Assembly: GCA_016748015.1 (NCBI GenBank)
Contig: JAAOMT010000468.1
Coordinates: 434,001 to 498,000 of the forward strand
Direction: 5' to 3'
DNA from: Geosiphon pyriformis uo1
Taxonomy: Eukaryota > Fungi > Glomeromycota
Length of the DNA stretch: 64,000 nucleotides
The notes beneath the pieces were generated by a model, which searched no databases, was not told the DNA's origin, and worked only from the letters and a program-made list of their open reading frames with translations. The translations under genes and the position numbers were made by a program. Shown in pieces: positions 1 to 60,349 of this stretch. How positions within the stretch are numbered: position 1 is the first letter of the stretch; each line of letters begins with the position of its first letter.

Positions 1-2100
1 TGGTCACTGAAGTATCTTTCTCATCTTTAACTGGTTTTATACCAATCAAAGTTTTCTCAAAGAGATACATTTAGGTTAGTTTTAATGTTGTCTCTATTTT
101 TTTCAAGAGCCCAAAAGTTTTTAATAACAGACCAGTTAACAAATTGGTTTTCTCTATCATAGCTTTTATATCTGGTGCTACTAGTACTACTTCTTTAAAC
201 AAAATAGTCAAAAAAATCAAAGTTTCAAAAAAATAAGAACAGTTGTTTGTCTCTGCTATTGTTACACTAAACCTATTTGTGGTTTCAATTGGAATCTTAA
301 ATAAAATTTCTATTGTTTCATTTGACATGTTATTTAAAATAGGTCAAGATTAACTACTGACTGTATTGCCAAATGTGGTGCTTTCCAGTAGATTTTTATT
401 AGTTTTAGAAATAAAACAACTATCTTCTATTAAGTCATTTGTTCTTAGAAACTGGATTGATCAAATGGTAACTAAATCATTTTTTCTGGTTTTTGGTATT
501 GTTGCTAATGGTACTTGGAAAACTATTACTAGTTGTTAAAAATTTACTGGATAAGTGACATCTACTTTAGTATCTAATGATACTTTCAAGATCAAATTGG
601 TTTATGTTAAAGCTGTTTTTTAGTTTGTACATGGTTTTTTGGGTGCAAAGTCAATGTTAAAAGACAATATAAAGCTTTTTTGTATAGAATTTGCCTTTTA
701 AAGTTCTTTGAATACAGTATTTTTAGTTAAATTTACAAGTTTTGTTTGCTTTGTTTCTCTTAAAATTGCCAAGTCTTTGGTGGTTTCTGAGTTTGGCTCT
801 TTTTTTGCTACTGTTGTGCTGTATAATGTATTTTTAGATGTGTTGCTATTAATATTAAGACAGCTCTTAATGTTTTTGGTATAATTACTTATGTTGTGCT
901 AAAGTTTATTAGTATTTGGCAATATATGGTAGTTTATTTTAAGAAGCTAGACTCTGTTGTATTTGTTTTAACTTATTGGTCAGTTTTGGTGGACAGAGAT
1001 AACATTAGAATTCTCTTTTTGATAAATCAAAATAAGACTATTTTGTCTTATAATAAGTTTAAGACCAAGTTGATTAATCTTTTTTTTGGATGTATAGCTT
1101 TTGAAATTAGTGATATGATTTTTTAGGTTGGTAGTTAAACATGTTTATTTTTTATTTTTCTGAATCTGGTTATCGTTTCCAATTTGTTTTGGTTATATTT
1201 GGTTTTCAGATTGACTTGGATGCTATAGTACTCAAGATTAGTATACTGAAAATATGTTGTATCTAATGAAAAACTCCTAAAAATTGGTGCTGTTTTCAGT
1301 GTTAAGATTTAGATTATCTGGCTTTGGATTATAAGATGTTTTTATCTCTCCTTCTTAAAACTTCCAAGGTGTTTACTTCTCATGTTATTAATAACAGGTT
1401 TTATGTTAAAGCTGCTGCTTCTGTGTTTTTATTGATTTCTAGTACTTTAGTTAATTCAGCTTTTTCTGCTAATATAATATCTGATAATTTTATGGTCTCT
1501 TTTTGGTTGATTTTTTTAGAATTAAAATTGGCCAAACTTTTTGTTTTAGTCAATTCTATTGTTAAGTCTGTTGGTTTTATGGTAAAAGTATTTAAACATT
1601 TATTAATGAAGACTTGGTTTTAAGTAGTGCTCTTGGTCTTAGGATTAATGAAGTTTTGATACATATAAGTTTCTTCAGCAAAGCTGTTGGTAAGCTAGAA
1701 CATAAAGTGATTGCTTTAAAAACTGAGTGTAACTATAAAGACATTGATATGTTTGGTTCTTATGTAAATTTGTTTTTTATTAATAATGATATATTTTCTA
1801 ATTTGATGTTATTTTGGAAACATAAATCTGTTGTTGTTAAGACTAATGCTTTTAAAATGACAGAGTAGTTGGTTGGTTTAGTTAATAATAGTGCTACATT
1901 GTTTAAAATTGTTCAAAAAATGTTTTTTTTGAGTAAGTTTTCTTCTGGAATATCAATATAATATAGCCTGAACTGGCTTAAGTAGCTAATTACATGTAGA
2001 AAATGTGTAAACTATATTTAGCACTGGAATACTTAGTTTGTTCTTAATTTCTAAATAATAATTGGGCTTTGTTTATTAAATTTAATAATAATAATAAAAA
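1..2100 (+). mobile_element. Half-LINE (ORF1-only non-autonomous retroelement) copy 1, decayed, 5' end outside window
   Basis: Fragmented ORF1-like frame (IWQYMVVYFKKLDS..WSVLVDRDNIRI; decayed C-x2-C knuckle near 1290) colinear with 9648-11737. The frame stops near 1960 and is followed directly by the LINE 3' tail motif and an A-rich end. No APE or RT sequence. Confidence 0.8.
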
Positions 2101-7400: not shown

Positions 7401-8991
7401 AGGTTCTCTATTCTTCGATTCTGTTTGTTCATTGAAGTGGTTTGGTGTAGCTTTTAGTGATAGACTGTTTGACAAAAAAGGGCGTGTTATGAGTTGGGAG
7501 ACTTTTTGGCACTGAAAAAGGCTGGATCTAAGGAGTCCTGCTCCTCACTGGTTTAAGGTGGTGTCTGAGTTTCTTTGTGGTAAGGGCGCTTCTTTGGCCA
7601 TCTCTGTGGAGTCTACTTATCCTTCTAGTTTGAGCATTTTGAATACCAAGGAGTTTTCTGTTGTTCAAAATGGGTTGCATGAGATTTGGTCTGGTTCTTT
7701 TGAGGTTTTCATGGATGGTTCAGTTAGGAATTATGGTTGTGCTGATGTAGCCAGTAGGGCAGCTGCTTATTTTTCTGCTATTGATTTGAGTGTTGGCATT
7801 AGGATTCTTGGGCTGTTGTCTTTTACTATGGCTGAACTGCAAGTCATTGCTTTGGCTTTGGAGTGCATTCTTTCTTCTTGTTCTGTTGTATTGTATTTTG
7901 ATAGTCAAATGGCCATTAATGCATGTGTTTCTGAAATGTCATTATCTGTGCCTGATTTCCACTTCTTGTGTTAGTTGGAGAGGTGCCGGATTTTTAATTT
8001 AGTTCATGACAAGAATTTTTCTGTTCATTGGGTCAAGATTAAGGGACATTTTGGGGTTCATGGCAATGTTAGGGTGGATGCTGCTGCTGGGGATGCTGCT
8101 TTCTCTTGATTTTCTTTGTCTGTTGATATCAGTGAGCATTTTTTGGTTGCTGAGAACACACCTGTGTCTGGCAACACTTATTATTTTGTTTGGGATTTGT
8201 TTAGATTCATTTGTTGTGCTCGGTGGGAAACAGGCTCTAGTTGAGACATGATTCCTATTATGTTGACTGAAACTGTTGATTGGGAAGCTACCATTAGGGT
8301 GTGGCATCCTAATTCGCATATGCTTGCTGGTTTTACTAGTCGGAAGTCTTCCTGTCTTTGCACCTATTTAATAAAGGCTGTGCACCATTGGATGCCTGTG
8401 GTGGTGAGAAAATGGCTGTATGATAAATATTACCCTGGTGTGCTGTGTTTGCTGTGTCGTGAGGTGGAGTTGTCAGATCATGTTTTCACATGCTCCCATA
8501 ATGCGGAGATTCGAAGGGAGATTTTGGCTGCTGCTTCTACTGACTGGGTGTCTTTTGCTGGATCTTGTAGCTTGTTGTCTTCTGCTGTTTTGCAATCTCT
8601 TGATCAGTATTTTTTGGATGTTGGCTTGTATTCTGCCTTATGTAAGAGATTTGTACTAAGGAATTGGTGTGTGGAGGCCATAGAAGTTCTCAAAAGTAAA
8701 AAGGAGGCTGTTAGTATTGTAGTTGGTTTTGTTGGGCATTTTGTTGAATTGCATTGCTCAAAAACCTGATTGGTAAGGTCTGTGTACAGGGTGAAAATGG
8801 AGGTGGTGGGTTTGGTTGGTGATGACACATTGATTTTTGGTTTGTCTCGTTGCATGAACTCTTTGTTGTCTGGCAAGGTGGTAAGGATGCTTGGTATTAT
8901 TAGCTCTTTTGCTGTTAGTTTTGGCTGTCATAGGTCTTGTCTCCTTTTCTCTAGTTTAAATGGTAGTCTGTGTGTTCTTTTAGGTATGTAA
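4438..8991 (+). pseudogene. LINE ORF2: AP endonuclease, reverse transcriptase, RNase H, C-terminal Zn finger
   Basis: APE motifs TETK, GEDFN, IDFIF; RT motifs GKAAG, IPK, KAYDSV, AFVND; RNase H motifs MDGS, AELQ, DSQ; CLLCREVELSDHVFTC. Many stops, and a short internal deletion near 7040 relative to the other copies. Confidence 0.92.
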
Positions 8992-9115
8992 TGTTGCCTT
9001 GTCTGGCCTGAGTGACTAGCCACATGTAGAAAGTGTGTGAACTGTATTTAGTTTAAGCCTCTTAGTTTGGCTTTATGTACTAGATAGCAGTTGGACTTTA
9101 TTTGTTAATTGCAAT
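8992..9115 (+). ncRNA. Conserved structured 3' UTR element of LINE
   Basis: Homologous to seven other tails in the window; stems AACTGT-ATTTAG/CTAGAT-A-GCAGTT and AAGCC/GGCTT. Confidence 0.7.
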
Positions 9116-9627
9116 AAAAAAAAAATTATATAAAACACAATATTAAAAAATTTAAATTTAAATTTGGTTTTACAAAAATTAATTATTATTAAAAAACAAT
9201 ATAATCTGTTTAAAATACAAAAAATTAAAGTTATTAAATATTAATAAGCATATAAACAATTTTTTAATTAATAAAAATTACATAATCTAAAATAATTTAA
9301 AATAATTGTTTAAGAAAATTGTTTTAAATTATTTAATTTCTAATAAAAAATTAATATTAAAACTTAATTTAATCAAATTTAAATAAGTATTATTATAAAA
9401 ACTTATAAATATTTACAAATTTATAAATATTTACAAACTTAAAAAAAAATAAAAACATAATTTATAATTAAGTAATTAAAATTTTAATACTTAAAACAAT
9501 ATTAATAATTAGAATTTTTTTATTAAATATAATATTTTTTAAAAAAATTAAGTTTAATAATAATAATATTTAAGTTTTTTTAAAATCAAAAATAATAATA
9601 TTATATTATAATTACATAATATAATAA

Positions 9628-11869
9628 CTTTTTGTCTCCTTAATTTTATGACTATGACCAGAACAAAGAGTAAAAAAGCTGCACCTGATATTTTTCCTAA
9701 GATATCTAATAAAATTTCAATTAGAGAAGCTTTTTCTGTTGTAGAAACAGAATGTTTTAGAAATATTTTTTTTATTTAGTAATCATAAAAAGCTGCCTTT
9801 GATAGCTACTAAAGCAACTTCTTCATCTTTGGCTGGTTTTTCATCAGTCAAAGTTCCTTCAAAGAGACACACTTGGGTTAGTTCTAGTGTTGTCTCTATT
9901 CTTATTAAGAGCCCAAAAGTGTTTAATAATAAACCAGTTAACAAGCTAGTATTTCCCTCTATAGCTTTAACATCTGGTGCTTTTAGCACTTCTTCTTCAA
10001 AGAAAATAGTCAAAAAGACCAAAAGTTCAGAAAAGTGGGAGCAGTTACTTGCCTTTGCTATTGTTACACTGAACTTCTTTATGGTTTCAAATAAAATCTC
10101 AAATAAGATCTCTGTTATATTATCTGGCATATCATTTAAGATGGACCAAAATTAACCATTGACTGTATTGTCAAATGTGGTGTTTTCTGGCAGATTATTA
10201 CTGGTTTTAAAAACAAAACAATCATTTTCTATAGTGTTATCTGTTTTTGAGAACTGGACTAACCAAATAGAATCTAAAGCATTTTTTTCCCTGATTTTTG
10301 GTACTGTTGTTGGTCGTGCTTGGGAAACTATTTCTAATCATCAAAAGTTTGCTGGGTGGGTGGCCTCTACTTTGGTGTCTAGTGCTACTTTTAAAATCAA
10401 ATTGGCTCATGTTAAGACTGTTTTTCAGTCTGTGCATGGTTTTGGGTGTGAAGTCAGTTGCAAAAGACAGTGTGAAGCTCTTTTACATGGAGTTTGTTTC
10501 TCAAAGTTCTCTGAATACTGTATTTTTGATTGAGTTCACAAGCTTTGTTTATCTTGCCACTCTCAAAATTGTCAAGTCTCTGGTGGTTTCTAAGTCTGGT
10601 TTCTCTTCTGCTGCTGTTGTACTGTGTGATGTGCCTTTGGATGTGTTTGCTACTAACATTAAAACAGCTCTCAATGTGTTTGGCAATATTATTTGTGTTG
10701 TGTTAAAGCCTGTTGGCATTTGGCAATATGTGGTTATTCATTTTGAGAAATTGGACTCTGCTGTGTCTGCTTTAAGTTATTGGTCAGTTTTGGTGAACAA
10801 AAATAGTGTTAGAATCTTCTCCTTGGTGAATCAGAATGAGATTATTCTGTTTCATGATAGGTTTAAGGCCAAGTTGGTCAATCTTCCCTCTGGCTGCACA
10901 GCTTTTAAAATTAGTGATATGTTTCATTTTTTATTTTTCTAAATTTGGTCATCATTTTTGGTTTGCTTTGGTTATATTTGGTTCTCAGGTTGATTTGAAT
11001 TCTACAGTTGTCAAGACTGATACCCTAAAAAAATGCTGTATTTGGTGGGAAATTTCTAGTTGTCAGCATTGCTTTAGGTGTTAAAAAGTAAGCCATTTGG
11101 CTGTGGACTGTAAAGTATCTCCACTTCTCTCTTTTAAGACTCTCAAGATATTTAAATCTCATTTTGTGAGTGGTGTTTCTTATGCAAAGACTTCTACTTC
11201 CCTAAATTCTTCTGAGTTTTTTTCCTTGGTAATTCTTATTTCTTCTTCCATAGTTGTTGGTAATCTTTTGGTATTCTCTTGGTTAACTTCTTTAGAGTTT
11301 AATTTGGTCAAGCTTTCTGTTTTGGTTGAGTTTATTGTCAAACCAATTGGCTTTTTGGTCAAATTATTTGAACAATTTATTAATGAGGATTTGGTTTCAA
11401 GCAGTAAACTTGGTCTTAAAGTCAATAAAATTTTGGTGCATATGGATTTCTTTAGTAAAATTGTTGGTAAGTTAGGGAAAGAGGTGGTTTTTTTAAAGAA
11501 AAGTGCTATATGGGGGATGTTAATATGCCTGGTGATTTAAAATACCCAGTTGGTCTGAATGATAAGGTGTTTTCTAACTTGATGTCTCTTTGGAAACATA
11601 AATTTGCTGTTGTAAAGACTAATGTCTTTAAAACAGCTGAGTAGCTAGTTAGATTAGTTAGTAATAGTGCTATATTGTTTGAAATTGTTCAAAGGATGTC
11701 TTCTTTGAGTAAGTTTTCTTTAAAGATTTCAGCATAGCATGTTTTTGATAAGTCTAAGTGACTAGTTATATGTAGAAAGTACATAATTAGCACCTAGTTT
11801 AGATCACTTAGTTTGATGTATTGTACTAGATGGCTTTTGGACTGTACTTGTTAAGCAAAAAAAAAAAAA
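9628..11869 (+). mobile_element. Half-LINE (ORF1-only) copy 2, near full length
   Basis: Single decayed ORF from ATG 9648 (MTMTRTKSKKAAPD) to TAG 11737 with RRM-like segments and CQHCFRC*KVSHLAVDC knuckle. The LINE 3' tail and poly(A) follow immediately. Confidence 0.85.
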
Positions 11870-12292
11870 TTTATTAGATAAAATTAGTAAAACAAAAAAT
11901 AAAACAAATATAATTATTATTTTAAAAACCAAATTGTTAATTTTAAAGATTATATAACCAAAAAAATCAATTAACTTAATTTTAATATATATTGCAAAAA
12001 ATAATAATCTTTTGATCAAAATTTAAATTTTGTTTTTATTTATTAAAATTAATTAACAAGTTAAAGTAATTATAATAGTATTAAAAATCTTAAAATAAAC
12101 AATAATATATTGTTAAATATTAACAAACTTTAATATAATTTAAAAGCCATGTTAATATTAACAGCAAATATATTTTAAGTATTTTATATAAAACAATAAC
12201 AATAAAAAAACTCAAAAATTACTATAAATTTAACAATTTTTTTTTATTAAAGTTTAATAAGTGAAGCCCAAAAACTATCTAGAACAATACAT

Positions 12293-13117
12293 TGTTACTC
12301 ATGGAAATATAGAAAATATATTAGCATGATTAGTAGCCAATTAGAAGTAGGCATAATAAATGTGGAATTCCAGGATTCTTCTCAGGAATTGCAGGAATTT
12401 CAGAATTCCTCAATAAGAAATCGCAGGGTTCCAGAATTCTAGGATTCCTCTCAAAGGAATCGCAGAATTCCAGAAATTCCAGAATTCTTGTCATAAAGAA
12501 TCAAGGAATTGAAGAATCTCAATTATGTATATATAACAGCAGGATTAGAAGCTGAAAAGACAGACCTCTCAGTTTAGATTTAATTTAAGCAATTTTCCAG
12601 TTCCCAATTATCAAATAAATAATTGTTCTATATCTCAATCCACTCTCCACTATCAACACTTCATGTTGATAGTAATTGATACTTAACCACACTGGAACAA
12701 TAGCTCTTAATTATGGCTATTGACAGGATACTAACTTGCAATTGCTTTTATTTATTTCTTTATCTTTTTTGATTTTTCTTTTATTTTTTTTGTTATTTCT
12801 TTGGTTTTACTAAATTGATTAAGGATTAAATGCTGAGATACAGACATTATAGGAACTGGTAAAAGACTTGTAAAACAAGGGTAGAACACTTATAGACTTG
12901 AGAATAGCTTACCAGGAAGATTACCAGCCACTGTGCTGAAAAAAAAATTTGACAGAATTGCGATTCCGGAAGGCTACTGAAAACAACTATCAAATCTCTG
13001 TCCATTATACAAAAAACTCCACAATAAAACCTTCAGATATCAACTCCAGAATACCAACCAAGCACCAAGTTACAAATTTGTTATTTGACTTGAAATCCCA
13101 AATAATTATCTGTAACA
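12293..13117 (+). mobile_element. Solo LTR (LTR-A), mosaic of C-type 5' part and B-type 3' part
   Basis: TGTTAC...GTAACA termini; GAATTCCAG repeats as in LTR-C; 3' half matches LTR-B; no internal region follows. Confidence 0.9.
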
Positions 13118-22569: not shown

Positions 22570-22985
22570 GTGATAATGATGAAGGTATTATGCCAGAATG
22601 CGTGCATAATACTGATGCAGGGTTTGATCTGAGGTATCCAGGGAAAAATGCCATCAAATTGGAACCACACTTGCACACCAGCATTGATTTGAAAGTAGCA
22701 ATGGAGATCCCAGCTACCACTATGGTTCTACTAGCATCTAAGAGTAGTTTAGCAAAGAAGGAAGTCAACATCAGAAGAGGAATAATTGATGCAGAATATG
22801 TAGGAAATATCATTGCTATGCTACAAAATGACTCAGAAAAGGCTTATACCATTGAGCCAAATGAAAAGATAGTACAGGCCATATTCTTGCCATTAGTTAA
22901 AATAGCTAGCTTAGTGTCAGTGGAAACAAGGGAGGAATTAGGGATAACTACAAGAGAGACACAGAGATTCAGATCCATGGGTAGA
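22570..22985 (+). pseudogene. dUTPase domain in Gypsy C pol
   Basis: All five trimeric dUTPase motifs recognisable: DAGFDL, SKSSLA, GIIDAEYVG, IVQAI, RETQRFRSMG (decayed RGxxGFGSTG). Confidence 0.92.
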
Positions 22986-23439
22986 ATAAATGTGCCAGTC
23001 AATATGATAGAAGAAGAGATCATTGACAAGAGAGAAATTATCTCCACCAGTCAAACAATCTCCATTCCACCATATGGCCAGCACATGGTAATCATAAAGC
23101 GAAAAGTAAAGGATCAGTTGCAGATTTTCAAAGCCAAACCAGCTTTTTGTGAATCAGGAGAGATTGGACTTGTCAATCTTTATATACTCGTCAAGAACCA
23201 CAACCACATTAAAATTTCCATTTACAACAACACTGGAAATATCATCGAGATTCCAGCCGAAACAATAATTGGATACTTAAGCACAGAAATAGAGAATTAG
23301 CCACAATACTATGTTCCAGACTTTCCACAACTTTGTGGATATGTAGATATTACATCACAAACAATATATGGACAAAATGAATGTTATTTGTTCCAACCAG
23401 AACAATTGAACCAAATGAACATGAGCAACTTAGACCCAC

Positions 23440-29927: not shown

Positions 29928-30280
29928 CTGTGTTAAATATTGAGCATTCATGAAGAAAAACAGGTTAATTTCACTTAATGGTTCAATCTTTGTTTTGGTT
30001 TCTGGAGTGTCATCAAAGTTGTCTGCTGGTGTTGTCAGGTTGCTTGGCATTGCTAATGCTTTTGGTGTTCATTTTAGTTTTTGTAAATCATGTTTATTTT
30101 TTTCTGGTACTGGTAATAATGTTTTAATTCACATAGTTGCTTAATGTTGTCCTGATCAATCTGAATGACAGGTCACATATAAAAAGAGCATAATTTGCAC
30201 CTAGTTTAGATTACTTAATTGATGTATTGTATTAGGTAGCATTTGAATCTTACTCATAAAGCATTAATAAAAAAAAAAAA
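29928..30280 (+). mobile_element. 3' end of the LINE interrupted at 14440 (ORF2 C-terminus, 3' tail, poly(A))
   Basis: MKKNRLISLNGS...LIHIVA* followed by the conserved tail. Confidence 0.9.
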
Positions 30281-36400: not shown

Positions 36401-37320
36401 TTCATTCAGTTTGCCATGCATGCTGGGAGGTTGGTTCTGGTTCTAAATTTTTGGCTGACAGTTTACTATCAGAGGTTGATTGGTTTCACTTGTCATTAGT
36501 GTGGCATCCTGACTTGAACATGGCTACCAGCTTTACCAGCAGACCCTCAACTGATGCATGCACATATTTCATGAAAGCTTTGCATTACTGGCTGTCAGTT
36601 GCTGTTTAGAAGCATTTTTATAATAGACTGTACTCTAGTGTATTGTGCTTATATTGTGGTAAAGTGGAGATATTGGATCATGTGTTCTCTTGTAAAATTG
36701 ATGAATCTGCTCAGCATCATTTGTTGAAATCTCATGTGAATTCCTAGAAGGCAGTCTTTGGTCTCTCTTACTCCACTTCGGGCATATTGCAGCTGTTGTC
36801 ATCCTGTGTCTCTGATTTTTTTGTGTTTATGACTCTTTATAAAGGTTTTGTTTTTGATGGTTGGTTTCATAAGGCTGTTTTTGTCTTCCACAATCCCAAG
36901 GTTGCCAGTTCAAAGATTGTCAAATTTGTGCATTCTCTTGGTCTTGCTTTTAGAACTGGTATCTGGTTGGTTCATGCTAAGCATCATGCTTATATGGAAA
37001 AAAACGGGTTGATTCCACTTGATGGGTCAGCTGTCATCTCAGTTCTTGGTTCAGCTTTGAGACTTTCTGCTAGTGTGGTCAAATTACTTGGTATAACTGA
37101 TACTATTGGTGTTTGTTTTGGCTCTTGCAGTTCTTATTTGTTTTTTTCGAATATAGGTAACCCAGTTTCTGTTCATATAACTGCATAGTATTGTTCTAAT
37201 TGGTCCAAATAGCTGGTCACATATGGAAAATGCATGATTCATGCTTAGTTTAGATCATTTCTTTGATGTATAACTACTAAGTAGTATTTGAATCTCATTC
37301 GTTAAGCAACAAAAAAAAAA
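30431..37320 (+). mobile_element. Full-length LINE, inactivated
   Basis: ORF1 30565-32504; ORF2 32501-37188 (APE, RT AFVDDTIW, RNase H YMDGS/WHKVKGHSG); tail and poly(A); candidate TSD AATTATAAG at 30422-30430 and 37319-37327. Confidence 0.93.
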
Positions 37321-39305
37321 TTATAAGTATTAATTTACAGATTAATATATTATCTAATTATTTATAATACTATATATAAACTAAAATACAGTTTTAATAA
37401 AAGCCAATTTAATTTAAAAAAAATACCAAGTATTAAAATAAAAATTATTTATTCAATAAATTTTTAATAACTAATTAAAGACAATATTAATAAAAAACAA
37501 AAAAATATAACTTTAATTTCTATTTAATTAAATTAATTCTTAAGATTAAATAATTTAATAAGTTAATAAATTAAAAACATATGTAAAAAAATGTTTTATT
37601 TTGTTTTTAAAATCACTAAAAATTGGTTAAAAATTAATATATTAAGAAATATAATCAAAAATTAATCCAAATTTAAATTAGTTAATATATTTTTATTATT
37701 ATTATTTAAAACAAAAAAATTATTTATTTATAATTATAATGTAATTAAATATTATATTTAATACAAATAATACAAAATTAATAAGAAAGACAAAAAAAAT
37801 TAACTTTAAAATTAAAAATTTATTATTAAAAATACCAAAAAAAAATTTTAAATTTTAAAAGAGTTGTTATTAAACATAATAAAATTTGAAAATTTGTTTT
37901 TTAATTGTTTTGGTTTTTTTGGTTATTTAAACAATAGTAAATAAACAAAAAAAACTTAATTACTAATTTTTTATTAAATATTTTAAGACTTTTAAAAGAA
38001 ACAAAAATTACATTAAAATTATTTAAATGGGATTTTTTTAATAAAAAAACTTTTAATTAAAAGTAAAAAAATGGGTTTAAATTAACAAAAAACCAAATTA
38101 ATTTATTTAAAAAAAAATATTTTTATAAAATACTATTAAATAGTTTTTATAATTATAAAAAATATTATTATTTACTTTAAGTAATAAAAAAATTATAATT
38201 TTTTTATTTTTTGTCTTAGTTGTAATTATAAAAATATAAAAAAAAAGTTAAATTTATAATAAGTTTTTATAATTTAAAGTATTTAAATATTAAATATATT
38301 AAATAAAAAATAAAAATATCCAATTATGTTTTTTTATGTGTTTTAAATACAGCTAAAAAATAGGTTATTATTAATAAATATATATATAAATAGATTTTTA
38401 TGTTAAAAATATTATTATTATTGTAATTTTTGTATTTTATTAAAAATATTATTATTATTTACATAATAATAATTAAGAAATTTAAAAACTAATATAATAA
38501 ATTTTAAAAGTTTTTATTTTTCAAATTGGTTTTTATTAATATTATAAAGTTTGTTTATAAGTTAATAATTTGTTATTAAAATTATATTTGAATTTTTAAT
38601 GTTAAATTAAGATTTAAATACAAAAAATTAGATTTAATTAATAATAATAATTTTATAATTGTTAATATTATTAAGTATTTATGTATTTATAATAAAAGTA
38701 ATATACATAAAATTGGGTTTTTTAAAAGATTATTATTTTATTTTGGTCTTAAAAATAATGTTTATATAGTTTTTAAAACTTTTTTTAATAATATAATAAT
38801 AAAAACATAGTATAATTTTAATTAATTAAAGTAGTTAGTTATATATAACAAGAACGTAAATTATACTTAATTTAAATTTATTTGTTAATTATTATTAAAT
38901 AAAAATTAGACCATATTTGTTATTGTAAATAAAAAATAAAAAAAAAGTTTAATTTTTTTTAATTATTATATTATAAAATGGTTTATTTTATATTTATAAT
39001 TATTCTAAATTGTTATAATTGTTTAATAACTTAATTTTAATGTTTACAATTATTATTAACTTGAAAAATTTTTGGGTTGAACATTTTTTATTATCAAAAC
39101 AAAAACAATAATATAATAAATATTTGTTTTTAAATACCAATTTGCAAAATTTTGTAATTATCTGTTCAACACAATTTTTAACATAATTTTATTAATAAAT
39201 ATTTTTAACAAATATAATGCTAATTTAAACAAAAATTTTGTTTAATAAATTAAATATAAATTATTAATTTGTATACTTTTTTCAGAATTGGTATTTTTAA
39301 GACGA

Positions 39306-39669: not shown

Positions 39670-40536
39670 ATGCTTTTTAAATTATTTAAAAACTTCATAC
39701 TACTCACCAGTTTTGCTTATGTTACATCGGCTATGTATTCTGATATATTTTATCTTGACTCTGCTCGCGACCCCCAACATACGCTCGACCTTTATATACC
39801 ACCCATAAACAATAATAACAACTCAGTCAGTCGTCCACCTATTTTGGTTTTCGTTCACGGAGGTGCTTGGTACAGTGGAGATAAAAAAGATAACAGCGAT
39901 TTATTGGAAAAACTTTCAACCATCGGGAATATAGCAGTTGCTTCTGTCAATTATCGTTTAACCAGTAAAGAAAATGGTATAAAGAACCCTGCACATGTAC
40001 AAGATGCAGCAGCAGCAGTGAAATGGGTCTCTCAAAATGGGGATAAATATGGGTACCAGGAAGATAAAATTTATCTTTCTGGTCATAGTGCCGGTGGATT
40101 TATAACAGCACAACTAATCTTTTTGCCAGAATATCTTGGAAATTTAGATCCAGATATTTCAAACCGGCTTCGTGGAGTAATTGGCATTCAAGGGGTTTAT
40201 GACATCCCGAACTTTCTACGAAGTGACGAGAGATATGAGCAAATTGTAATACCGGCCTTTGGAGAAGATGAATCATTACAAAGAGCAGCTTCTCCTCAAT
40301 ATCAACCTGATTCCACGAAACCTAAAATTATTTCTCCTCCCTATTTGATCATTCACTCTCTTGACGATACGCTTGTCAGATTGGATCAAGCAGAAAATTT
40401 TTATCAACATATTCTTGATCAAGGAGCTGCAACATCAAATGTACAGCTTGAAACCTCTTTAAAAGGAGATCATTATGAGATTCTAAAAACCGATGCATTA
40501 ATTCATAGAATGGTCCAATTTATTTCAAACAGTTGA
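39670..40536 (+). CDS. Alpha/beta hydrolase (HSL-like esterase / kynurenine formamidase-like) with probable signal peptide, intronless
   Basis: Intact 288-aa ORF; HGGAW oxyanion loop, GHSAG nucleophile elbow, HSLDD and GDH for the catalytic Asp/His; hydrophobic N-terminus. Confidence 0.9.
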   Translation: MLFKLFKNFILLTSFAYVTSAMYSDIFYLDSARDPQHTLDLYIPPINNNNNSVSRPPILVFVHGGAWYSGDKKDNSDLLEKLSTIGNIAVASVNYRLTSKENGIKNPAHVQDAAAAVKWVSQNGDKYGYQEDKIYLSGHSAGGFITAQLIFLPEYLGNLDPDISNRLRGVIGIQGVYDIPNFLRSDERYEQIVIPAFGEDESLQRAASPQYQPDSTKPKIISPPYLIIHSLDDTLVRLDQAENFYQHILDQGAATSNVQLETSLKGDHYEILKTDALIHRMVQFISNS

Positions 40537-48506: not shown

Positions 48507-48705
48507 CCCGTAGTCGGCGTATGTTTTTTTCTGGTTTGGATGGTCATGTCAGTGTTATGATAGGTGTGTAGTGTAGCCTTGGCCGGCTTGAGTGGCTGGT
48601 CACGTGTAGCAAGAGCATGAGTCGCACTTAGTTGTAAATCCTTTGTTGTTTATGTATGCTAGGTAGCGATTGGGCCGCACTCGTAAAACGTGTAATAATA
48701 AAAAA
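48507..48705 (+). mobile_element. Extremely 5'-truncated LINE insertion (~200 bp), CpG-rich
   Basis: Last codons of ORF2 (RSRRMFFSGLDGHVSVMIGV*) plus the complete 3' tail; flanks AAATATTA/AAATATCA. Confidence 0.85.
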
Positions 48706-50545
48706 TATCAAGTTAGAAATTAATTAATCAAATTTTAAATTAATTAATTAATTATTACAAGTTAATAAAATAAAAATCTATTTTAAAAACTTAATTTTTT
48801 TTATAATTAATATTACTTTAAAATTTATAATTTTAACTAATATTTTGAAATTAATTAATTACTAATTTTAGTTATTCTAAATTTAAACAGGAAATTTTTT
48901 TTTTGTTAAAATATATTTTTTATTTTCTTATATTATTAAAAAATTTACAGTCAAAATTTTTCATAGAAAAATTGACATTTATAATAAAATAATTACATAT
49001 TGTTGAAGAGCTTATAATTAAAAATTCTGCAAAAAAATTGATTTTTATTACAAAATAACTACACAAAATAATTAACATAAAATTAATTATTCTATTATAA
49101 GTTTAATAGCATAAATAATTCAAAATATAAAAAAATACTTTGAAAATAAAATAGCTTATTAAAGAGTTAATAACTTTTATTAACAATAAAATTAATATTA
49201 ACAATATTAAAAAAATAAGTAAAATTTTTGGTAATTTTGGTGTTTCTTGTTAAAAATTTAACATAGCAAAAATAAATTTAAATAATAATAATTACTTTTA
49301 ATACAACAATTCTAAAGTATTACTAATTAATTTATATTTATTATAAACAAAAATTTGATATTTTAAATAAAATTGTGATTTTAAAGAAAATATTTTATCA
49401 ATATTTTGAAAATTAAATTAATAATTATTTATTTAAAAACTATAATATTTTTAAAAATTAAACATAATTTTTATAAAAATTTTACATATTATTTACATAA
49501 AAAACCAAAAAATTGCAATTATAAAATACTTTATATTTATTTTTAAAAACTATTATGTTAATTATTATTATAAATAATTATTTAAATAAAATATTATAAT
49601 ATTAATCTTTAAAAATTTTGTTAATTTTAAAGATTTTTTAATCTATTTAAAAGTTTTAATGATTTTTTTTAAACATTTTACTTATAAAAAATTCTTTTTA
49701 TAAAAAACAAAAATAATAACAATAACAATAACAATAATAATAATAATAATAATATTTGTTAATAATTAATATTTAAATAAGTTATTTAACTGTTTTTAAC
49801 TATATTTAGTCTAATTTGAATTATTTAATTATAATTAATAAAATTTAGTATTGTTTTTTTATTTTTTTAATAATTTAACAATTTTTAATAAAATTAATTT
49901 TAAAATACACTTTTTTTTTATTAAGCTATTATAATATTAAATTATTTTATTATAATAGTCAAATTATTAAATTATTTTTGTATTTTTTTTAATTGTTTCT
50001 AAAATAATTACAAATTTTTTTAAAAAATAAAATAAAAAAATTAATATTTTGTTAATTGTTATAATTAAAAGCAATTAGTTCAAGTTATTAAAATTTTAAA
50101 AATATTATGGAAATTGTATTTAGTCTTAAACAGAAAAAAAAACAAGTAAATTTTAATAAAAAAAAACTAAAATTCAACTTTGGTTTTAATATTAATAAAT
50201 ATAAATATTTTGATTAAAAAATTGATTTTAAAGACTTTAAAATATTTTTTTTTACTTAAATTAAATTTACTTATATATATATATATATATATTGTTTTAT
50301 AAAATTATTTTTAAAAACTTATTATTTTATATTTTTTATTATTATTAATTATAAATATTATTTAATATTATAATTAGCTATTTGGTATTATTATATATTA
50401 TTTTATGTTATTATATATTATTACATATTAATTAATTATTTTTTTGTAATTAATTATTTTTTTTATTTAAATAATACTAATAAAATCTTTTTACTTTAAA
50501 CAAAACCAATTTTATATTAATAAAATTAGAATTTATATTTATTAT

Positions 50546-51931
50546 TTTTTTTTTATTCCATTTTATAAGTGAGGTCCAAACACTACCTAGAGCTATATAT
50601 CAAAGAAATAACATAAACTAAGCATAAATCATGCACTTTCTACATGTGACCAGCCACTCAGACCGATCAGGACAATACTACACAGCTATATGTATCAAAA
50701 CAGAATCACTAATACCAGAAAAGAAAAAACATTGTTTGTGAAAATCAAAATAAACACCAAGAGCTTCAGCCACACCAAGTAGTCTAACGATGCCAGCCGA
50801 GAATCTAGAAGCCGAGCCAGAGACCGAGATAGAAACTGAACCGTCAAGTGGGATGAGATTATTTTTTTCCATAAATGCATGATGCTTAACCTGAACCAAC
50901 CAAATATCATTCCTAAAAGCAAAACTAAGAGAATGTGCAAACTCAACAATATTTGAACTAGCAACCTTGTGAGATTTGAAAACAGAGACAGCTTCACGAA
51001 GCCACTCACTAAAAACAAAACCCTTTAAAGAGAGCCGTAAATACAGAGACATTAGAGGCACAAGAAAACAGCAATTGCAGCACACAGGAAGAAGAGAGAG
51101 ACAGGCCAGAAAGCACCATCCAAGACTTTGAACATGAATCCAGTATCTGAAGATGTGTAAAGCCATCAACCTTGCAGAAAAAAACATGATCTGACATCTC
51201 TACCTTACCACAATATAAGCACAACACGCTGGGGTATCTTCTGTTATACAAGCATTTACGAACAGCAACAGGTAGCCGGTAGTGCAATGTCTTTATGAAA
51301 AAACTGCACACATCCGCTGTGGGCTTGTTAGTGTGGCCAGCAGCCATATGTGAATCAGGATGTCATACCAGTGAGGAGCAAGACCAATCAACGTCCATGA
51401 ACAAACTGGCAGGCAGAAATTTAGAACCAGAACCGATCTCCCAGTGCGCACGACTAATGGAACAAAAAATATCACAAACAAAATGTTTAGAATTGCCAGA
51501 AACAGCCCCACCGTCTGCCAACAAAAAGCGCGCATACAATTGAGAAGGAAGAAACCAGCCCAAATGAAAGGAAGCCCCAGCTATAGTATCAGCATGTTCA
51601 TTTCCAATCACACCAGAGTGACCTTTCACTTTGTGCCATTCAACCATCAAATTTTTGCCACAAATAATGTTTACAATATGCTGGTGTTTGACTCAACAAC
51701 AGTTGCAAAAATCCAGACACACCAGACCCAATTCTGACTTGCAGACATCCAGAGCAGCTTGACTATCAGAAAACAGACAAACAAAACTAGAACGGAGAAC
51801 ACACTCCAGTGCTAGTGCAATAGCTTGCATTTCTGCCAAAGTAAAAAACAGCAGACCCGAAACTTCAACACCCAAACCCAGATCAATGTCACTAAAAAAA
51901 ACACCAGCCCCAGCCATGCAATTCTCGGTAC
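50546..51931 (-). mobile_element. 5'-truncated LINE (RNase H to poly(A))
   Basis: AEMQAIALALE, SDSQ, WHKVKGHSGVIGNE, CLYCGKVEMSDHVFFC; candidate TSD TATTTATTAT at 50536-50545 and 51932-51941. Confidence 0.92.
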
Positions 51932-52618: not shown

Positions 52619-55600
52619 TTTTTATTTTTTTTTTATTTATTTATTTAACGAGTGAAATCCAAACACAACCTAGTGCTATACATCATACAAATGATCTAAA
52701 CTAGATATAAATCATGTGCTTTCTACATATGACCAGCCACTCGGGCCAGTCAGGACTACACTATACATCTATATGCACAAAAACCAAATTTCCAATACCT
52801 GAAAAAAATAGACAAAACCTACGAAACCCGAAACCAACTCCAAAAGCCTTAGCTACTCCCAGCAATCTAACCACACCAGCCAAAAACACCTTAGACAAAC
52901 CAGAAACTGAAACAGGAGTGAAGCTGTCATGCGGAATCAGACTGTGCTTTTCCATAAACACTCGGTGTCTGGTGCAAACCAATTAAATGTCATCCTAAAA
53001 TGCAAGACAGAATGCATACACAAAGCCCACAATCCTTTTAGTACCTTCATTAGAATCATTAAAAACCAAGACAGACTCATAAAACCACTTATCAAAAACA
53101 AAGCCTTTACACAGAGCAACACCAATTTCAACTTCAGAAACACAAGAAGCCAAAGCCTGTAAGACACAAGAAAAAGAACAAGACAGGCCAGAAAAAGCCT
53201 CCCAAGCTGAAGCATGAGTGCCTGACAAATGAGCACGGCCAACGGCATCCTGGGGACATGAAAAGACGTGATCCGAGATCTCAACATCACCACAGAACAG
53301 ACAGACCACACTGGGGTATCTCCTATCATACAAATGCTTGCGTATAGCAACAGGAAGCCGATGATAGAGAGCCTTCATAAAGTAAGTACAACAGCTAGCT
53401 GTATGCATGCTGGTAAAACCGGATGCCAAGTGAGAATCGGGGTGCTACACCATAAAAGACTTAGACCAATTAATATCAGCGCGCAACCTATCATCTACAA
53501 TATGAGAACCCACTCCAACCTCCCAACGAGCTCGATGAACTGACTGGAAAACATCACGAACAAAGTGTCTAGAATTACCAGAAACTGCCATACCACCAGC
53601 ACATAGAAAATGTTCATTGACTAAATGAGATAGGTGCCAAGCAGAAAGAGCAGCATCTTTAGCAAGTGCATCAACACGATCATTGCCTGAGACACCTAAA
53701 TGACCCTTCACCTTGACCCAATTCACATCCAAATTTTTCTGACAAATGACAGTAGTAATGTGACGACGCTCAATCCAACAGCGGTTCCTGAAATCTGGAC
53801 AAACCAGCGACAATTCCGACCTACACGTATCTAAAACAGCTTGGCTATCCAAGAACAAGTCAACCGAACGAGAAAAAGGAACACACTCAAGGACCAAAGC
53901 TATGGCTTGCAGCTCAGTCAGAGTAGAAGAAACCAAACCAGACACCCCAACACCCAAACCCAAGTTAATGTCCTTAAAAAAAACAGCAACACCCGCCCTC
54001 ACGTCAACAGATCCCAGACCAGAAAGAGATCCATCCATATACACAGAAAGGCGGGCAGCTTCAATGGTCAGCAAAGTGTCACGAACCACACCAAAATCAT
54101 GAGAAAAATGAATGTCAGACACAGCATGACCATCTGCCAAAGAAGAACTTGAGGAGAGAGGTACAACACCACCAAGAAAGCGAATGGAGAGATCAAACCA
54201 GAAAGGGACTGGGCCACGAGGGTCCAGCCTCTTCTAATGCTTGAAGGTTCTCCAACTGAAAACATCACCATTACAGTCACGAAGCTGTTCCATGAAAGCA
54301 ATCTCATAACACCTGAGCGAAAAAAAAACAGGAATCATCTAGAACCAAAGACATAGGAGTATCACACCGACAATGAAAAGCACAAGCCAGAGGGCCCCCC
54401 AAAGACAAATCACACCCGGAAAAAATACGGACCACACCAGCCAAAAAATTATTTGAGGGACTAACACCAACACAAGCCAGAAACAGTAAGGGATGACGAG
54501 GATGCCAGCTGAGAATCTGGAGGTTATGAGACCTATGTGAAAACAAGCAACCCAAGACACTAGTGGAATTTGCAAAAGCAATAATAGAGGCCGATTTACT
54601 CTCAGCCTGGATTTGTTCGAAAGTCTTTAGATTGTACAGAAAGGGATGATGAAGTGTATCACTGGAGAAATCACATGGCAACCCAGACTTGGACTTAAAG
54701 ATCTTGCATACCAAAGTGTCCTATTTACTACAAACACCCAAAGAAATGAAATTGAACTGAGTCCTGTAGCTGATGATAGGGAAAAGAACCACAGACACCA
54801 AATATGCATACTGTTTGTCCGAAATTGCCTTTCTCAAAACAAGATTCACAAAAAACTGTACATCAGCCTAAGCTTTAGCCAAACTAGACCTCAAAAGACC
54901 CCCAGAAGACAAAAAAATACCCAAATAGCGATGAGATTCCTCTTTCTTGGCAATAAAAATAGGCACGCCACTGATAGTTAAACGAAAGTCCAATACCTGA
55001 CAGTTGATAGAAATGGCTACTGTCTTGTCGTTATTCACAGAAATGTCATTGAACCTGAAAAACTCACTAGCAATATCAAGAATGTGTTGTATAACAGCCT
55101 GGCTACTACCAACCAAAATAGTATCATTGACGAAAGCACCAGCAGTAAGAAACAAAGTTAGTCTAGCACGAGAATCTACTCGGCCTGTTTTAGAAACAAA
55201 ATAAGAATTCAACTTGTAGTCCCATACACTCTCCTGCCTCTTGACCTCGCACAAAAGTAAATCATAAAAAATACGCCAGAGAAGAGGCGAGAAAACTTCT
55301 CCCTGATCCAGCCCATTGTGGACACAATACCCATCAGTTAAACCAAAGTCAGTCATTACTCTGTTGACGTGACCATTGTGAATACTGCCAAAAAATCTAA
55401 TAAACCTGTCACACATTTTGATCCTGACCAAACTCCTTCTAAGATGTTTCCAACCAACTGAGTCATAAGCCTTGCACATGTTCTGTAAAACCAGCCAAAG
55501 TTTACGGTTCTTCTTCAAGGCATCCTCAACCACAGAACCGACAGCAAAAATGAGAGACTGCATCATCGTACCTTTCAAAACTGAAAAATTGTCTCCACGA

Positions 55601-58600
55601 AGAACATCAAAAGTGCTGCAAGCCAAAGAGATCCTATCTAAAAGGATTTTGAAGAGAATCTTGTGGGCCGTTTCAATTAAAGCTATAGGACAGGTGTTTG
55701 TAAGAACTCCCTCCCAATCATATGGTTTAGGAATCATCGAGACCCAAGCTTCCCTCCAAGGCCCAGGAACCAATTTGCCAACCAGACAGAAATTTAAGAG
55801 CACCAAAAGCATATCCAAAACAGATTTGTCACAATGTTTTCACAATTCGTTGGAGATACCAAAAAAACCAGCCGCTTTTCCATTAGGAAGATTTTTAACA
55901 ACAGCTGACAACTCATCAAAACTAATCGAGCACATGACATCAGAGAAAGCACCATCAAACATGTAATTCAGAGGCTGAAATTGATGAACCCAATCCTTAG
56001 AGAAGTCAGACACCACCTCATGTTTTCTGGTCCATCTCTCCATAATTTTGTCCATCTTGGACTTAACCAAATCAGGCTCCAAAATCAACTCTTCTTTTAC
56101 AACCAGATGATTTAAGACCACCTTGCAAAAAAGATGCTTCAAAACATTTCTAATGGTGTGACCCTTGTTCAGCTCAAAACTCTCCATTCTTTTACCAATA
56201 GCCTGCTTGATTGAGGATTCTTCAGCACACTTGGATTCCAAAAATTTCAAAGAGCGGTATGATTTCCTTGCTTTGGCTAGCACAGAATGAATAATATCAA
56301 AATTAAAACCTGAAAAAAACAGAGACTTAATCTTTGATGCACCAGGAGAGTCAAGTCTGTGCCATACCTCCAACAAAGAAGCAAAACCATTACTTGAAGC
56401 CAAACACGAAGCCTTAACCAACTTAAAAACCAGCAGCTCCAGTTTGTGAAACCTAGAAGAAGTCCTAGTAAACACGCCGTCAAAACCTTTGAACCATTTT
56501 TTCTTGAATGTACTATCCGCTGAAAGAACCATGATTTTGCGAACAATATCCCACATAGTGTCCACATCTGAAAATCTCACTGCCACATCAAAAGCATCTG
56601 AGAACATAGAGACATTAGCAGCTGAAGCATCCTTGAACTCCAACCACCTAGCATCATCGGCACCTTTGACGTCAAACTTCTAACAATCTCTATTCGCCTG
56701 CTTGCGAAGAGAATTCAAGCGCATATCCAAGAGCCCGCCCAAACCCAAATTCACTGAAACAGCTTGATGGTCTGTGTCAAAATGCTCACTGACATTCAAA
56801 ACCTTATGATGCACTATTGCATTGACAAGACATGAGGAGACAAACACATAATCAATTACTTTCGTAACACCCTTAAAATTTTCCCAAGTGGACATTTTCG
56901 CAGCCGGGCTACCAACTAAAGAATTGACCAGACCCAAATCAAAATATCTTTTGAAACTTGCACTTTTATGAGAACTGTCTTCATTAAAATCACCTCTGAG
57001 AATGACGAAAGAAGATTCATTAACAGCCTTTGCAATAAGAGAATTAATCTCATCAGCCTGAGAAAACTGTACCACCGAAGAAGTACCAGTGTAGAGCCCC
57101 AGAATTGACACTGAGAGCTTATTCTTAAAAAGCAATCTAACAGACAAGAGCCGACCAGGCACTTCAGAAACTCTACACACATGCCTTGCCAAAGAAAAGT
57201 CCATAACAACTGCCACATCAGCACCCAGATAACCAGAATCCAAACCAGAGGAAAACACCCAAACACCATCAAACTTGTTGGCGATCCAGAGACGAATCTT
57301 ATCTCTCAACTTTGTCTCAGTAAAAATAGAAACCAAATTTCCCATGTTCTTGTGCCAACGAACTATATCTTCTTGTTTCGCAGGAATGTTCATGCCTCGA
57401 ACATTACACATAGCAACCTTCCAAATCAAACCAGTCATTGAGAAGATGAGAAAACCGAAGAACCCAAATCAGAATACAACATATCCAGCCTTGCCAAAAC
57501 TGAGCCGATTGATGCATCTAAAGCCATCAACTTTGACTCTAAACCACCAACCTTGGCAGTTAGAACCTTCAAACTACTGGAACCAAAATCAAGATTAATA
57601 TCATCAACAATAGGGCAAAGAGAAGGAGAGGTCACCAACGGAACATCCAGTGCCATATCCAAATCCACGCATGAGGCCAGAGAAGCAGACACAACGGAAT
57701 GAGAGGTGAGAAAAAAAGACTCCGAAGATACCACCTCAACACAACTCAGCTTCTTTGCAATGACAGAAACTCGGTCTGTCAAAAACTCCAAAGAGCATTC
57801 CAAAAATGCCAGCCGACTGTATAAACTAGAGATATTAAAAGGGGAGGATTCTACTGAGGCAGATTCTGCACCGAAACTTGCACCAACAAAAAAAGAACCC
57901 AAAGAAACCACACGAGAGGAAGTGCTACTAGCAACTTGGGCCCATGTCTTGCCACCAAAGGAAACTGGGTAAGTGATAGGAGCCTGCTTTCTCCTATATA
58001 CATTAGCCAGACAAACCCGATCCTGAGAAGTTACCACCTGTCTACTGCAAGCACCAGAATTCTTACTCATAGAACAAATATCAGAAACATGACTGAATTG
58101 TTTGTACACTGTACAACAAGCTAAAGATAGACCAGCCCAATGCAAACTTACACCCTTGAAAACCAGAACCGAACCAATAGCAGCCAACTTGGATGCCTCA
58201 CTCTCAAAACAGACCACAGCACACTGATCATGAACATATGAAGATGGATTACAGCCAATAAAACAAGTTTTCCCATCATAAGCCCCCACCAATTCAGACA
58301 AATCATGGGCAGTGGTGCCAACTGAAAGAGTGTAAAGCAATGCCCAATGCTGATCCCTAAATATCCACGTTTGTTTATCATCAATAGCCTTTGTCACACG
58401 AACAGAATCTTTTCCCACCAAAACAGACCATCTAGCTGCGACCAAATCGGCCATCTCCAATAACTCAAATTCTACTAGGGCCTTTTGCCAAAGACCAATA
58501 AGCTGCATCTTGATTGATACAATTTTTCCAAATTTAGAAAACACTGTCTCAACTGCAGATTTGGGAAGATCAACAGGGATCTCCTTGATTATCACCTTCT

Positions 58601-58939
58601 GATCTGAATGACTGTTTACCTTTCTGAGATCATTATTTACCATGATTTTTTCACAGATCACCAACTCTCTGACCTTAACCAAACTAGACTCATTCGTGAA
58701 AGTTGATCTAATGACTCCAGGAAATTTTGAGGGAGTTGAAGCACCCCCAAAACCGTCAATTTTATAAAAAATCTTTTTGATCTTAAATAGCTTATCACTA
58801 TTTAACTTTTCAGGCACAGCTGACAACTCCACATCCAAAGCAAAAGATTTTACTGGCTCGAAACGATGACACTCTAAACCACGTGACTTGGGCGGCGGCA
58901 ACTGATTGGACTCAACAAACGTGTAAGGAGGAAGCTTCA
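52619..58939 (-). mobile_element. Long 5'-truncated LINE (partial ORF1 57435-58939, ORF2 57438-52761); least decayed long copy
   Basis: CNVRG, TETK, GDFN, IDY, TDH (APE); RT; RNase H; candidate TSD ATAATTAATAAT at 52607-52618 and 58940-58951. Confidence 0.94.
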
Positions 58940-60349
58940 ATAATTAATAATACAAATTTTTTTACTTAATTTATTAAAAAAATTATTAAAATTATAAACA
59001 AAATTTTTTTTTTGATAAATTAAATATACAAAGTTTAAAACTTATTTTTTGTTTTACATATTTTAATTTTTAATAATTTTAATTGTATAAACAGAATTCT
59101 TATTAATTAATATTAATTATTTGAAAATTAATTTATTAATTTAATCCAATTTGGTAAATTTTATTATAGTTTTTTACTATAATTTAATTAATTAATTATA
59201 ATTAAATTAACATAATTTTATTAAACTTAAACAAAACTAAAAATTTTTTTTAATAATTATTATTTAATCTAAATATATATTCAGTTTTTTGAAATTATTA
59301 TTTACCGAAATATTTTTATTAATAGTTAATAATATAATTTTAATCAAACCAAATTTAATAATAAATATAAATTTAATAATTTTCTTAAAATTTTAAAAAA
59401 ATGAAAACTTTTTTAAAATTATTTATAAATAAAAATAATTAAAAAATTATTTACACTTTTTTCATAAAATTTTTTTTTTAAAAACCAAATAATTAATATA
59501 ATAACTTTTGACTTTTTTTAATTATTATAAGAATAGATTAATTAAATTTTAATACAATAAAAAAAGCAAAAAAAAAAAAAATCTTTTTATTCTTAATATT
59601 ATAACTAATTATATTCAATCAATTTGTTAATATTTATTTATTTTGTTTTAAAAGTATTAATTTAAGAATTTAAGAAAGTTTTGTTTTTATTGTCAATTTT
59701 AAATTTATTATTTGTCATCATAGATTTTTTAAACTCAAACTTTGTATTGGTTTTTATATTCAAAGATAATAATCTGCTTAGAAAAAGATTTGTTTTATTA
59801 TTAGAATTTTTTTTATCTTTTTTGTATATTATAGCATATGATTATAAATTATATACAGCCAACGTCTAATGGACGGAAATTAGTTGGGCTACACCGCAAA
59901 AAATATATATACAGCTTTTAATAAATTGTTTAATAAAAAATTTGAACATTGAATGATTATATTGTATTTCATTATTCACCGATTTATGTTGTGATTTTAA
60001 TTTTTGGAAAAATATTTTTATTGTAATAAATATTCTTGAAATTAACAATACGCATTGAAAAATATTATTATGTTCAAGGTAATAAAGTCTCATTTCACAA
60101 TAATAATAATAATAATAATCAAAGGTAGAATTCAAAATGTATATATATTCTAAAAAAAAAAACATTAAATCAAAAATAACAAAAATGGTTTTGTATAATT
60201 ATAACGGTCTTTGCATATAAATAAACTATCTTTATAGAGCAAAATTTTTGAGGCTTTCCCCCACCACCCTCACGTACTACAAAAGTATCTAAAGCTCTTT
60301 AGTTAAATTTGGTCACTTGCCTGGAGACCTTTTTGTTTCGCTAAATCAT

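Follow-up and report, generated by a model that had tools for sequence, protein, structure and literature searches.

A conserved four-way-junction RNA spans the 3' UTR of LINEs and ORF1-only half-LINEs in Geosiphon pyriformis

The window (the whole stretch of 64,000 nt analysed here) contains LINE and half-LINE copies of Geosiphon pyriformis, whose features are collected in Table 1. The host LINE comprises an ORF1 with a weak RRM match, followed by APE endonuclease, RT and RNase H domains, as identified with Pfam and Atlas. For the full ORF2 these two sources yielded only the APE, RT and RNase H architecture and a search of PDB sequences gave no match; a 501-aa piece of it is 100% identical to NCBI protein G9A89_005138 of the same organism. 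Three full-length LINEs are present, with only ~66% DNA identity. The LINE bodies have a GC content of 35-44% and the intergenic DNA is extremely AT-rich. An element of ~120 nt at the 3' ends of eight LINE and half-LINE copies had been reported in the initial annotation, and all eight (8/8) were found with a covariance model, R1, at scores of 97-130 bits; the model was built from these same eight copies and comprises 125 positions and 34 base pairs. Two further features lie among the repeats. The first is an LTR-type retroelement between LINE copies (21000-26000, + strand), with a dUTPase domain at 22338-23300 and an integrase at 24877-25644. The second is an ORF with a strong alpha/beta-hydrolase match (BD-FAE / Abhydrolase_3) at 39670-40536 (+), which is probably a host gene.

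Table 1. Positions of the element, its helices and neighbouring features in the window. Bit scores are those of model R1; the focal copy is the one at 48566..48690.
Feature	Position	Strand	Remarks
Element, least decayed copy of the window (focal copy)	48566..48690	+	GC 0.50; 119 bits; LINE insertion 5'-truncated to ~180 nt
ORF2 stop TAG, focal copy	48569..48571	+	Frame end; its A and G lie within candidate helix P0
P1, 5' strand GCCU	48576..48579	+	Pairs with 48672-48675 (GGGC); columns 12-15/111-114, 93.6% paired
P2 hairpin	48580..48602	+	9-bp stem 48580-48588/48594-48602; 5-nt loop YGAGU 48589-48593; 94.1% of cells paired
P3 hairpin	48603..48619	+	5-bp stem 48603-48607/48615-48619; 7-nt A-rich loop; 96.7% of cells paired
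P4 long arm	48623..48668	+	Base helix 48623-48632/48658-48668; distal helix 48634-48640/48647-48653
P1, 3' strand GGGC	48672..48675	+	Pairs with 48576..48579
Tail segment CACUCG	48678..48683	+	Complementary to P2 loop (48679-48683) and to stop-codon segment AGUG (P0, 48678-48681)
A-rich tail, focal copy	48691..48707	+	Read from the sequence
Element, 3' end of full-length LINE	52642..52766	-	130.5 bits
Full-length LINE body	about 52626-59300	-	Pfam: ORF1 with weak RRM match, then APE, RT, RNase H
Element, 3' end of internally deleted LINE (~2.1 kb)	50559..50683	-	130.5 bits
Element, 3' end of second full-length LINE	37183..37308	+	R1 match; DNA ~66% identical to the first
Element of LINE 5'-truncated to ~310 nt	30139..30263	+	R1 match
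Element, 3' end of third full-length LINE	8986..9111	+	R1 match; divergent subfamily
Element, 3' end of ORF1-only half-LINE (about 9150-11869)	11732..11857	+	120 bits
Element of decayed half-LINE-type copy	1956..2082	+	GC 0.25; 97.5 bits; upstream flank like that of the 11732 copy
Ninth copy, eroded nearly wholly to A/T	38805..38926	+	GC 0.13; 32.6 bits, E 6e-6
Partial match, extreme 5' truncation	12251..12361	-	15.9 bits; LINE tail consists of the last ~55 nt only

The position of the element is constant. The ORF2 stop TAG occupies element positions 4-6 in 30/30 young copies, after a conserved C-terminal peptide, and an A-rich tail follows directly after position 125. The element, first described as lying between stop codon and poly(A), is therefore the entire 3' UTR. 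A coding extension through it was considered and rejected, as stops occur in all three frames. When ORF2 was searched by tblastn in 264 kb of unselected DNA (the window and 200 kb upstream), 15 matches were obtained, two of them ending before the C-terminus; the remaining 13 (13/13) have the element directly after, with C-terminal peptides only 35-59% identical to the query. The 5'-truncated copies, from ~55 to 310 nt, all retain its 3' part. Two young copies in the fetched loci, L019:1623-3125 (-) and L023:1-1503 (+), present at least 501 open codons reaching the edge of the fetched DNA, so there are probably LINEs that were active recently and whose ORF2 is intact in its C-terminal half. The tails of copies in L002, L028, L046, L004 and other loci are not pure poly(A), many being (ATA)n, (AAAT)n or (AAAAT)n, which suggests that the RT slips on the UUAAAUA end or that the tail repeats are templated, rather than plain polyadenylation.

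The same 3' tail is carried by a non-autonomous partner, the half-LINE, and the copies at 11732 and 1956 are both of this ORF1-only type. Its ORF (10298-10942) is 31% identical to the ORF1 of the LINE (E 1e-17) whereas the two UTRs share 77% DNA identity, the UTR being the only 3' part in common. HAL1 or half-L1 elements are ORF1-only derivatives riding on the machinery of the resident LINE, and the Geosiphon half-LINE is likewise an ORF1-only retroposon. Partners of the L1 type are thought to need only poly(A), whereas here a folded and specific UTR has been kept far better than the protein. The partial match at 12251-12361 (-) was considered as a SINE-like partner and rejected: its LINE-derived ~55 nt correspond to the P4 3' strand, the P1 3' strand and the tail, and form a truncated LINE tail inside a separate repeat whose matches end before the tail. 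This separate multi-copy repeat lies upstream of the ~55 nt (12255-12420, -) and contains tandem GGAATTCCTG-like units; it had 2167 first-look candidates, of which 40 were scored and showed 84-94% identity.

The element is very abundant in the Geosiphon pyriformis genome. A first look at the whole genome gave ~47,700 candidates, all of the scored ones (150/150) exceeding 120 bits, and the unselected 264 kb contain 17 copies above 80 bits. Copies outside this genome were not found in the word-index, exhaustive and metagenome searches: the best 120 matches of the word-index search were all Geosiphon paralogues, and the exhaustive search gave the same result for all ten matches checked out of its best 150. 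When metagenomes were scanned for a conserved pattern of 21 nt, two contigs were returned, and these were rejected as chance because neither matches the covariance model.

The element was also compared with described RNA families. A search of the window against all Rfam families at their gathering thresholds gave 0 matches, so the models for hammerhead, HDV-like, twister, twister-sister, pistol, hatchet, hairpin and R2 RNAs are unmatched. This agrees with the initial annotation, which had seen no hammerhead, HDV, twister or pistol consensus and had left a match to an already described Rfam family to be sought. With the young copy L001:1440-1680 and E values up to 10, the sole Rfam match was folP RNA, a chance one (20.8 bits against a threshold of 99). 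ARAGORN identified no tRNA or tmRNA in the window, and a tRNA-like or tRNA-derived tail was not encountered. An ENE clamps the A tail through a U-rich internal loop (about U5 on each side) that divides its stem. An ENE-type poly(A) clamp was rejected for the element, as the internal loop of P4, read from the alignment, is UUU against AUAGCA or AUUGUA and lacks a paired U-tract. The literature searched on Geosiphon and on transposons of AMF contains no description of this RNA. The fold, a four-helix junction spanning a LINE 3' UTR, is not known to have been described before; its most likely role, selection of the element's own RNA by the reverse transcriptase, follows a known principle.

The core of the fold is formed by four helices, P1 to P4, as the initial annotation had drawn by hand. 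RNAalifold recovered the four of them unprompted from the eight copies, together with an outer helix, P0. The minimum free energy (MFE) structure of single young copies is the same four-way junction, with z-scores of -2.8 to -4.0, and so is that of the focal copy (48566..48690); the MFE fold of decayed copies is not the four-way junction. P2 has a 5' strand that varies between C and U and between A and G, the opposite G/U-rich 3' strand being almost fixed. The P3 stem has 5-6 bp across copies. In P4, 96.2% of cells are paired in the base helix and 94.8% in the distal one, and the strongest covarying pairs were identified in this arm: 60/106 (A:U in 33 copies, G:C in 15), 59/107 (C:G, U:A and A:U), 63/102 and 75/87.

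Sequence variation keeps the pairing, which had also been claimed from the window copies, and the switches that separate subfamilies were found in P1, in the P4 base and in the P4 distal helix. P1 is GUCC/GGAC or GCCU/GGGC, and columns 13/113 change from U:A to C:G in 6 copies. The P4 base is CAC/GUG, CGC/GCG or UGC/GCA, and AGC/GCU or AAC/GUU in half-LINE copies, the latter two being a transversion-type change from C:G to A:U. The distal helix of P4 alternates between AUCA/UGAU and GCCA/UGGC.

Pairing was measured on an alignment of 55 copies (A5) made with MAFFT, blind to structure. This sample comprises 25 copies from unselected DNA or present as bystanders in fetched loci, and 30 that are the best matches of the model, so that 30/55 were chosen by a structure-aware score. 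In A5, standard pairs make up 95.0% of cells, and sliding the partners by 1-3 columns lowers this to 27-38.5%; pairs changed on both sides number 25, against 6-12 in the slid controls. Among 669 inferred substitutions, 196 are G>A and 158 are C>T. Because the spectrum is dominated by these two, the decay null was made to keep the substitution types: a FastTree tree and Fitch ancestral states were used, and substitutions were re-placed by branch and type on random sites of the same base. Under this null, pairing is 80.7 ± 2.1% (maximum 85.8) and the observed 95.2% was reached in 0/500 runs. Double-change pairs are less separated in the tree analysis, with 23 observed against 17.5 under the null (4/500 runs); most compensatory changes are transition pairs, a product of decay too.

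The initial annotation had proposed covariation as a check on the fold beyond C>T/G>A decay, and this was found in aggregate and not at single pairs. In an R-scape-like analysis (APC-corrected G-test against the tree null, all 8256 column pairs) no single pair is significant: the lowest E overall is ~ 5.6, and among structural pairs 60/106 and 75/87 come first, at ranks 7 and 8 with E ~ 11-12. Taken together, 4 nested pairs are found in the top 45 of the 8256 column pairs and 8 of the 34 in the top 200, where ~0.2 and ~1 are expected. This was matched by 0/100 null alignments, and slid structures give 0-2.

The most direct test with decay in mind contrasts one mutation type across partner bases. 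In stems, G>A occurs at 0.034 per branch opposite C and at 0.102 opposite U (OR 0.31, p 4e-9), and U>C at 0.009 opposite A and at 0.045 opposite G (OR 0.20, p 9e-7). Transitions that break pairs are thus 3-5 times rarer than the same transitions keeping them. Pairing-neutral changes (C>U and A>G) proceed in stems at the same rate as at unpaired sites, and transversions in stems are 3 times rarer. The 25 copies that were not chosen by score show the same direction, with OR 0.16 (p 1e-7) for U>C and a weaker effect for G>A (OR 0.61, p 0.04), and the contrast is absent with slid partners. Across stems G:U pairs number 339 and A:C 57, although G>A is the commoner mutation. Because G:U far exceeds A:C, the fold belongs to the sense RNA and not to the DNA or the antisense strand, and a DNA-level palindrome was rejected on the same count. 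The nested four-way junction P1-P4 is well supported and under selection beyond transition-biased decay, and selection keeps the fold in subfamilies that share only ~66% identity in coding DNA.

The junction is probably extended at its base. P1 would continue into a nested 4-bp helix, P0, which includes the stop codon: an AG-UG segment starting inside it pairs with CACU of the tail in 95% of cells. P0 is present in the MFE fold of 29/30 young copies, to which it adds -4.7 kcal/mol on average. The initial annotation had called the element pseudoknotted, through pairing of the P2 loop YGAGU with ACUCR just before the tail. The complementarity is indeed present, in 93.5% of cells; the pseudoknot beyond it is unsupported, since the loop Gs mutate like unpaired Gs and the nested P0 explains the complementarity. 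Both pairings use the same tail bases and are mutually exclusive, and the 55 copies do not tell them apart. A loop-to-tail pseudoknot is accordingly graded as possible.

That the form locked by the P2 loop and the tail would be the active structure is rather unlikely, although R2Tg has a pseudoknotted 3' element (PMC12222951) and the combination C25:A122, in addition to the complementarity itself, was found 3 times where ~6 are expected. Loop positions G26 and G28 have 10 and 9 parsimony steps, similar to an unpaired G (~8 per column) and above G:C-paired stem Gs (~5); the P0 positions G6 and G9 have 5 and 9. G>A per branch is 0.064 in the pseudoknot G:C pairs, near the unpaired value (0.069) and not that of stems (0.034), with P0 at 0.048. 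The bare loop:tail duplex is worth -3.65 kcal/mol, topological cost not yet counted, against the about -4.7 of P0, and pairing all 5 nt of a 5-nt loop would be sterically unlikely.

The most likely function of the UTR domain, and the one that we favour with some confidence, is that of an ORF2p recognition element for TPRT, as in stringent-type LINEs. In this proposal the ~120 nt from the ORF2 stop to the A-rich tail would act as one folded domain on the sense transcript, P1 closing a junction with three arms: P2 (9 bp, YGAGU loop), P3 (5-6 bp, A-rich loop) and the long bipartite P4. The domain would be a cis-acting signal through which the ORF2 protein recognises its own RNA, and it would bring the single-stranded A-rich tail beside it to the nicked target for TPRT, a placement equal to that of stringent-type LINEs and R2 elements. 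Half-LINEs would borrow ORF2p via the same signal. The domain possibly also contains polyadenylation cues: the internal loop of P4 has a UGUAUA-like motif, and the tail bases resemble AAUAAA. The recognition reading is drawn from the following: the domain is the whole UTR, is next to the tail, is kept in truncated copies, outconserves the adjoining protein and was captured by the half-LINE. ORF1-only half-LINEs and all 5'-truncated copies have this fold without change. Features of stringent-type LINEs found here are the extreme 3' position beside the tail, a structure conserved across diverged subfamilies (single pairs being non-significant) and a tail shared with the half-LINE. Counting against this reading, LINEs with a poly(A) tail, L1 for example, can function in the absence of a specific 3' signal.

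Three known systems resemble the element in part. The first comprises the 3' hairpins of UnaL2 and ZfL2, for which binding by ORF2p at the start of TPRT is assumed or has been shown (PMC4176376, PMC1636434). As in UnaL2 and ZfL2-1/ZfL2-2, a conserved structure lies at the extreme 3' end, just before the tail, and is common to non-autonomous partners. Those structures, in animal LINEs of the L2 clade, consist of one hairpin of a few tens of nt with short tandem repeats after it, whereas in the Geosiphon element a four-way junction of ~115 nt would provide the signal; it occupies the whole UTR, precedes an A-rich tail and belongs to an RNase H-bearing fungal LINE.

The second is the C-module of TRE5-A from Dictyostelium discoideum, which has a predicted structure and is essential for retrotransposition (PMC3159450). 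When it was replaced by a heterologous terminator, RNA levels and 3' ends were normal and retrotransposition was abolished; TRE5-A.2, an ORF2-deleted and non-autonomous element, keeps the C-module and is mobilised in trans (PMC3159450). The likeness consists in a ~130-nt module at the 3' end of a poly(A)-type LINE, with TRE5-A.2 as a parallel to the Geosiphon half-LINEs. The C-module model is a ~54-nt three-stem hairpin obtained with mfold from two elements and has no sequence relation to the Geosiphon element, whose four helices are backed by many divergent copies and which does not target tRNA genes, the window being free of them.

The third is the R2 3' UTR RNA (R2Bm and R2Tg; PMC12222951, PMC11601368), which was adopted as a working model. 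In R2Tg a pseudoknotted element is followed by an A-rich tract feeding the RT active site (PMC12222951). R2 elements are site-specific and single-ORF, carry a restriction-like endonuclease and do not require a poly(A) tail, and their pseudoknot and base triples were resolved by cryo-EM; the Geosiphon LINE, in contrast, has an APE-type endonuclease, an unsupported pseudoknot and no match to the Rfam R2 model. A bolder form of the recognition proposal takes the four-way-junction RNA of this APE-type, A-tailed LINE from an early-diverging fungus, possibly switching between P0 and the loop-tail pseudoknot, as a specific RT docking platform convergent with the R2 3' pseudoknot element. We regard this as tentative and on the whole doubtful. 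If true, the element would be a compact (~120 nt) portable retrotransposition tag, already captured by ORF1-only parasites.

The first alternative to recognition by ORF2p is that the fold serves mainly 3'-end formation or RNA stability, through poly(A) cues or as a shield against exonucleases, and not recognition by the RT. A LINE needs its own terminator, the element adjoins the tail, a UGUAUA-like motif lies on the unpaired side of P4, and UUAAAUA or AAUAAA-like bases are found beside the tail in nearly all copies. However, A and T columns hardly mutate, so that their constancy carries little information, and poly(A) cues are short linear motifs that leave the selection on ~34 pairs in four helices unexplained. 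Any terminator would serve the half-LINEs, yet they have kept the exact UTR despite an ORF1 identity of 31%. We consider this alternative unlikely.

Somewhat less likely again is a domain bound by the RRM-type ORF1p, for packaging or cis-preference, or one acting on translation at the ORF2 stop within P0. The weak RRM match in ORF1, the half-LINEs that encode ORF1 alone and keep the UTR, and the stop codon within the candidate closing helix are all in its favour. Identities of 31% for ORF1 and 77% for the UTR agree better with ORF2p as a common partner than with co-evolution with ORF1p.

A lack of function, the pairing being left by common descent and C>T/G>A decay, is very improbable. It would agree with the absence of significant single pairs in the R-scape-like test and with transition double changes being common under the null. 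Against it, the observed pairing lies ~7 sd above the decay null, structural pairs are ~8-fold enriched among the top covarying pairs, and both the rarity of pair-breaking mutations, without effect in slid controls, and the excess of G:U over A:C run contrary to decay. A self-cleaving ribozyme or other processing RNA can practically be dismissed: multi-helix junctions underlie several natural ribozymes, and other retroelements do contain ribozymes (PMC8501958, PMC3185411), but the window contains no Rfam family at gathering score, the young copy gave only the chance folP match, and genomic copies extend uninterrupted across the element into the tail and thus do not reflect any internal cleavage.

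Template choice by LINE RTs has been structurally solved only for R2, with biochemistry for a few animal L2-type hairpins and for TRE5-A of Dictyostelium. The Geosiphon element adds a fungal LINE of APE, RT and RNase H architecture with a well-defined RNA of ~120 nt, thousands of natural variants and a natural parasite sharing the UTR, on which RT-RNA recognition is directly testable. Should the RNA suffice for mobilisation, it would provide a template tag of small size.

Model R1 is also useful for annotation, as it marks LINE 3' ends in Geosiphon pyriformis even when heavily eroded. Ghost copies with a GC of 0.09-0.13 were still found by it, at 38805-38926 (+) in the window and at L046:3641-3763, L027:885-1010 and L007:1047-1153 in the fetched loci. 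These are LINE tails eroded almost entirely to A/T, consistent with the strong G>A and C>T spectrum (354/669 substitutions). Finally, the copy at L048:2130-2300 (-) contains ~45 nt inserted after the P2 5' strand, which brings it to 171 nt instead of 125, and is overlapped by a weaker match on the opposite strand.
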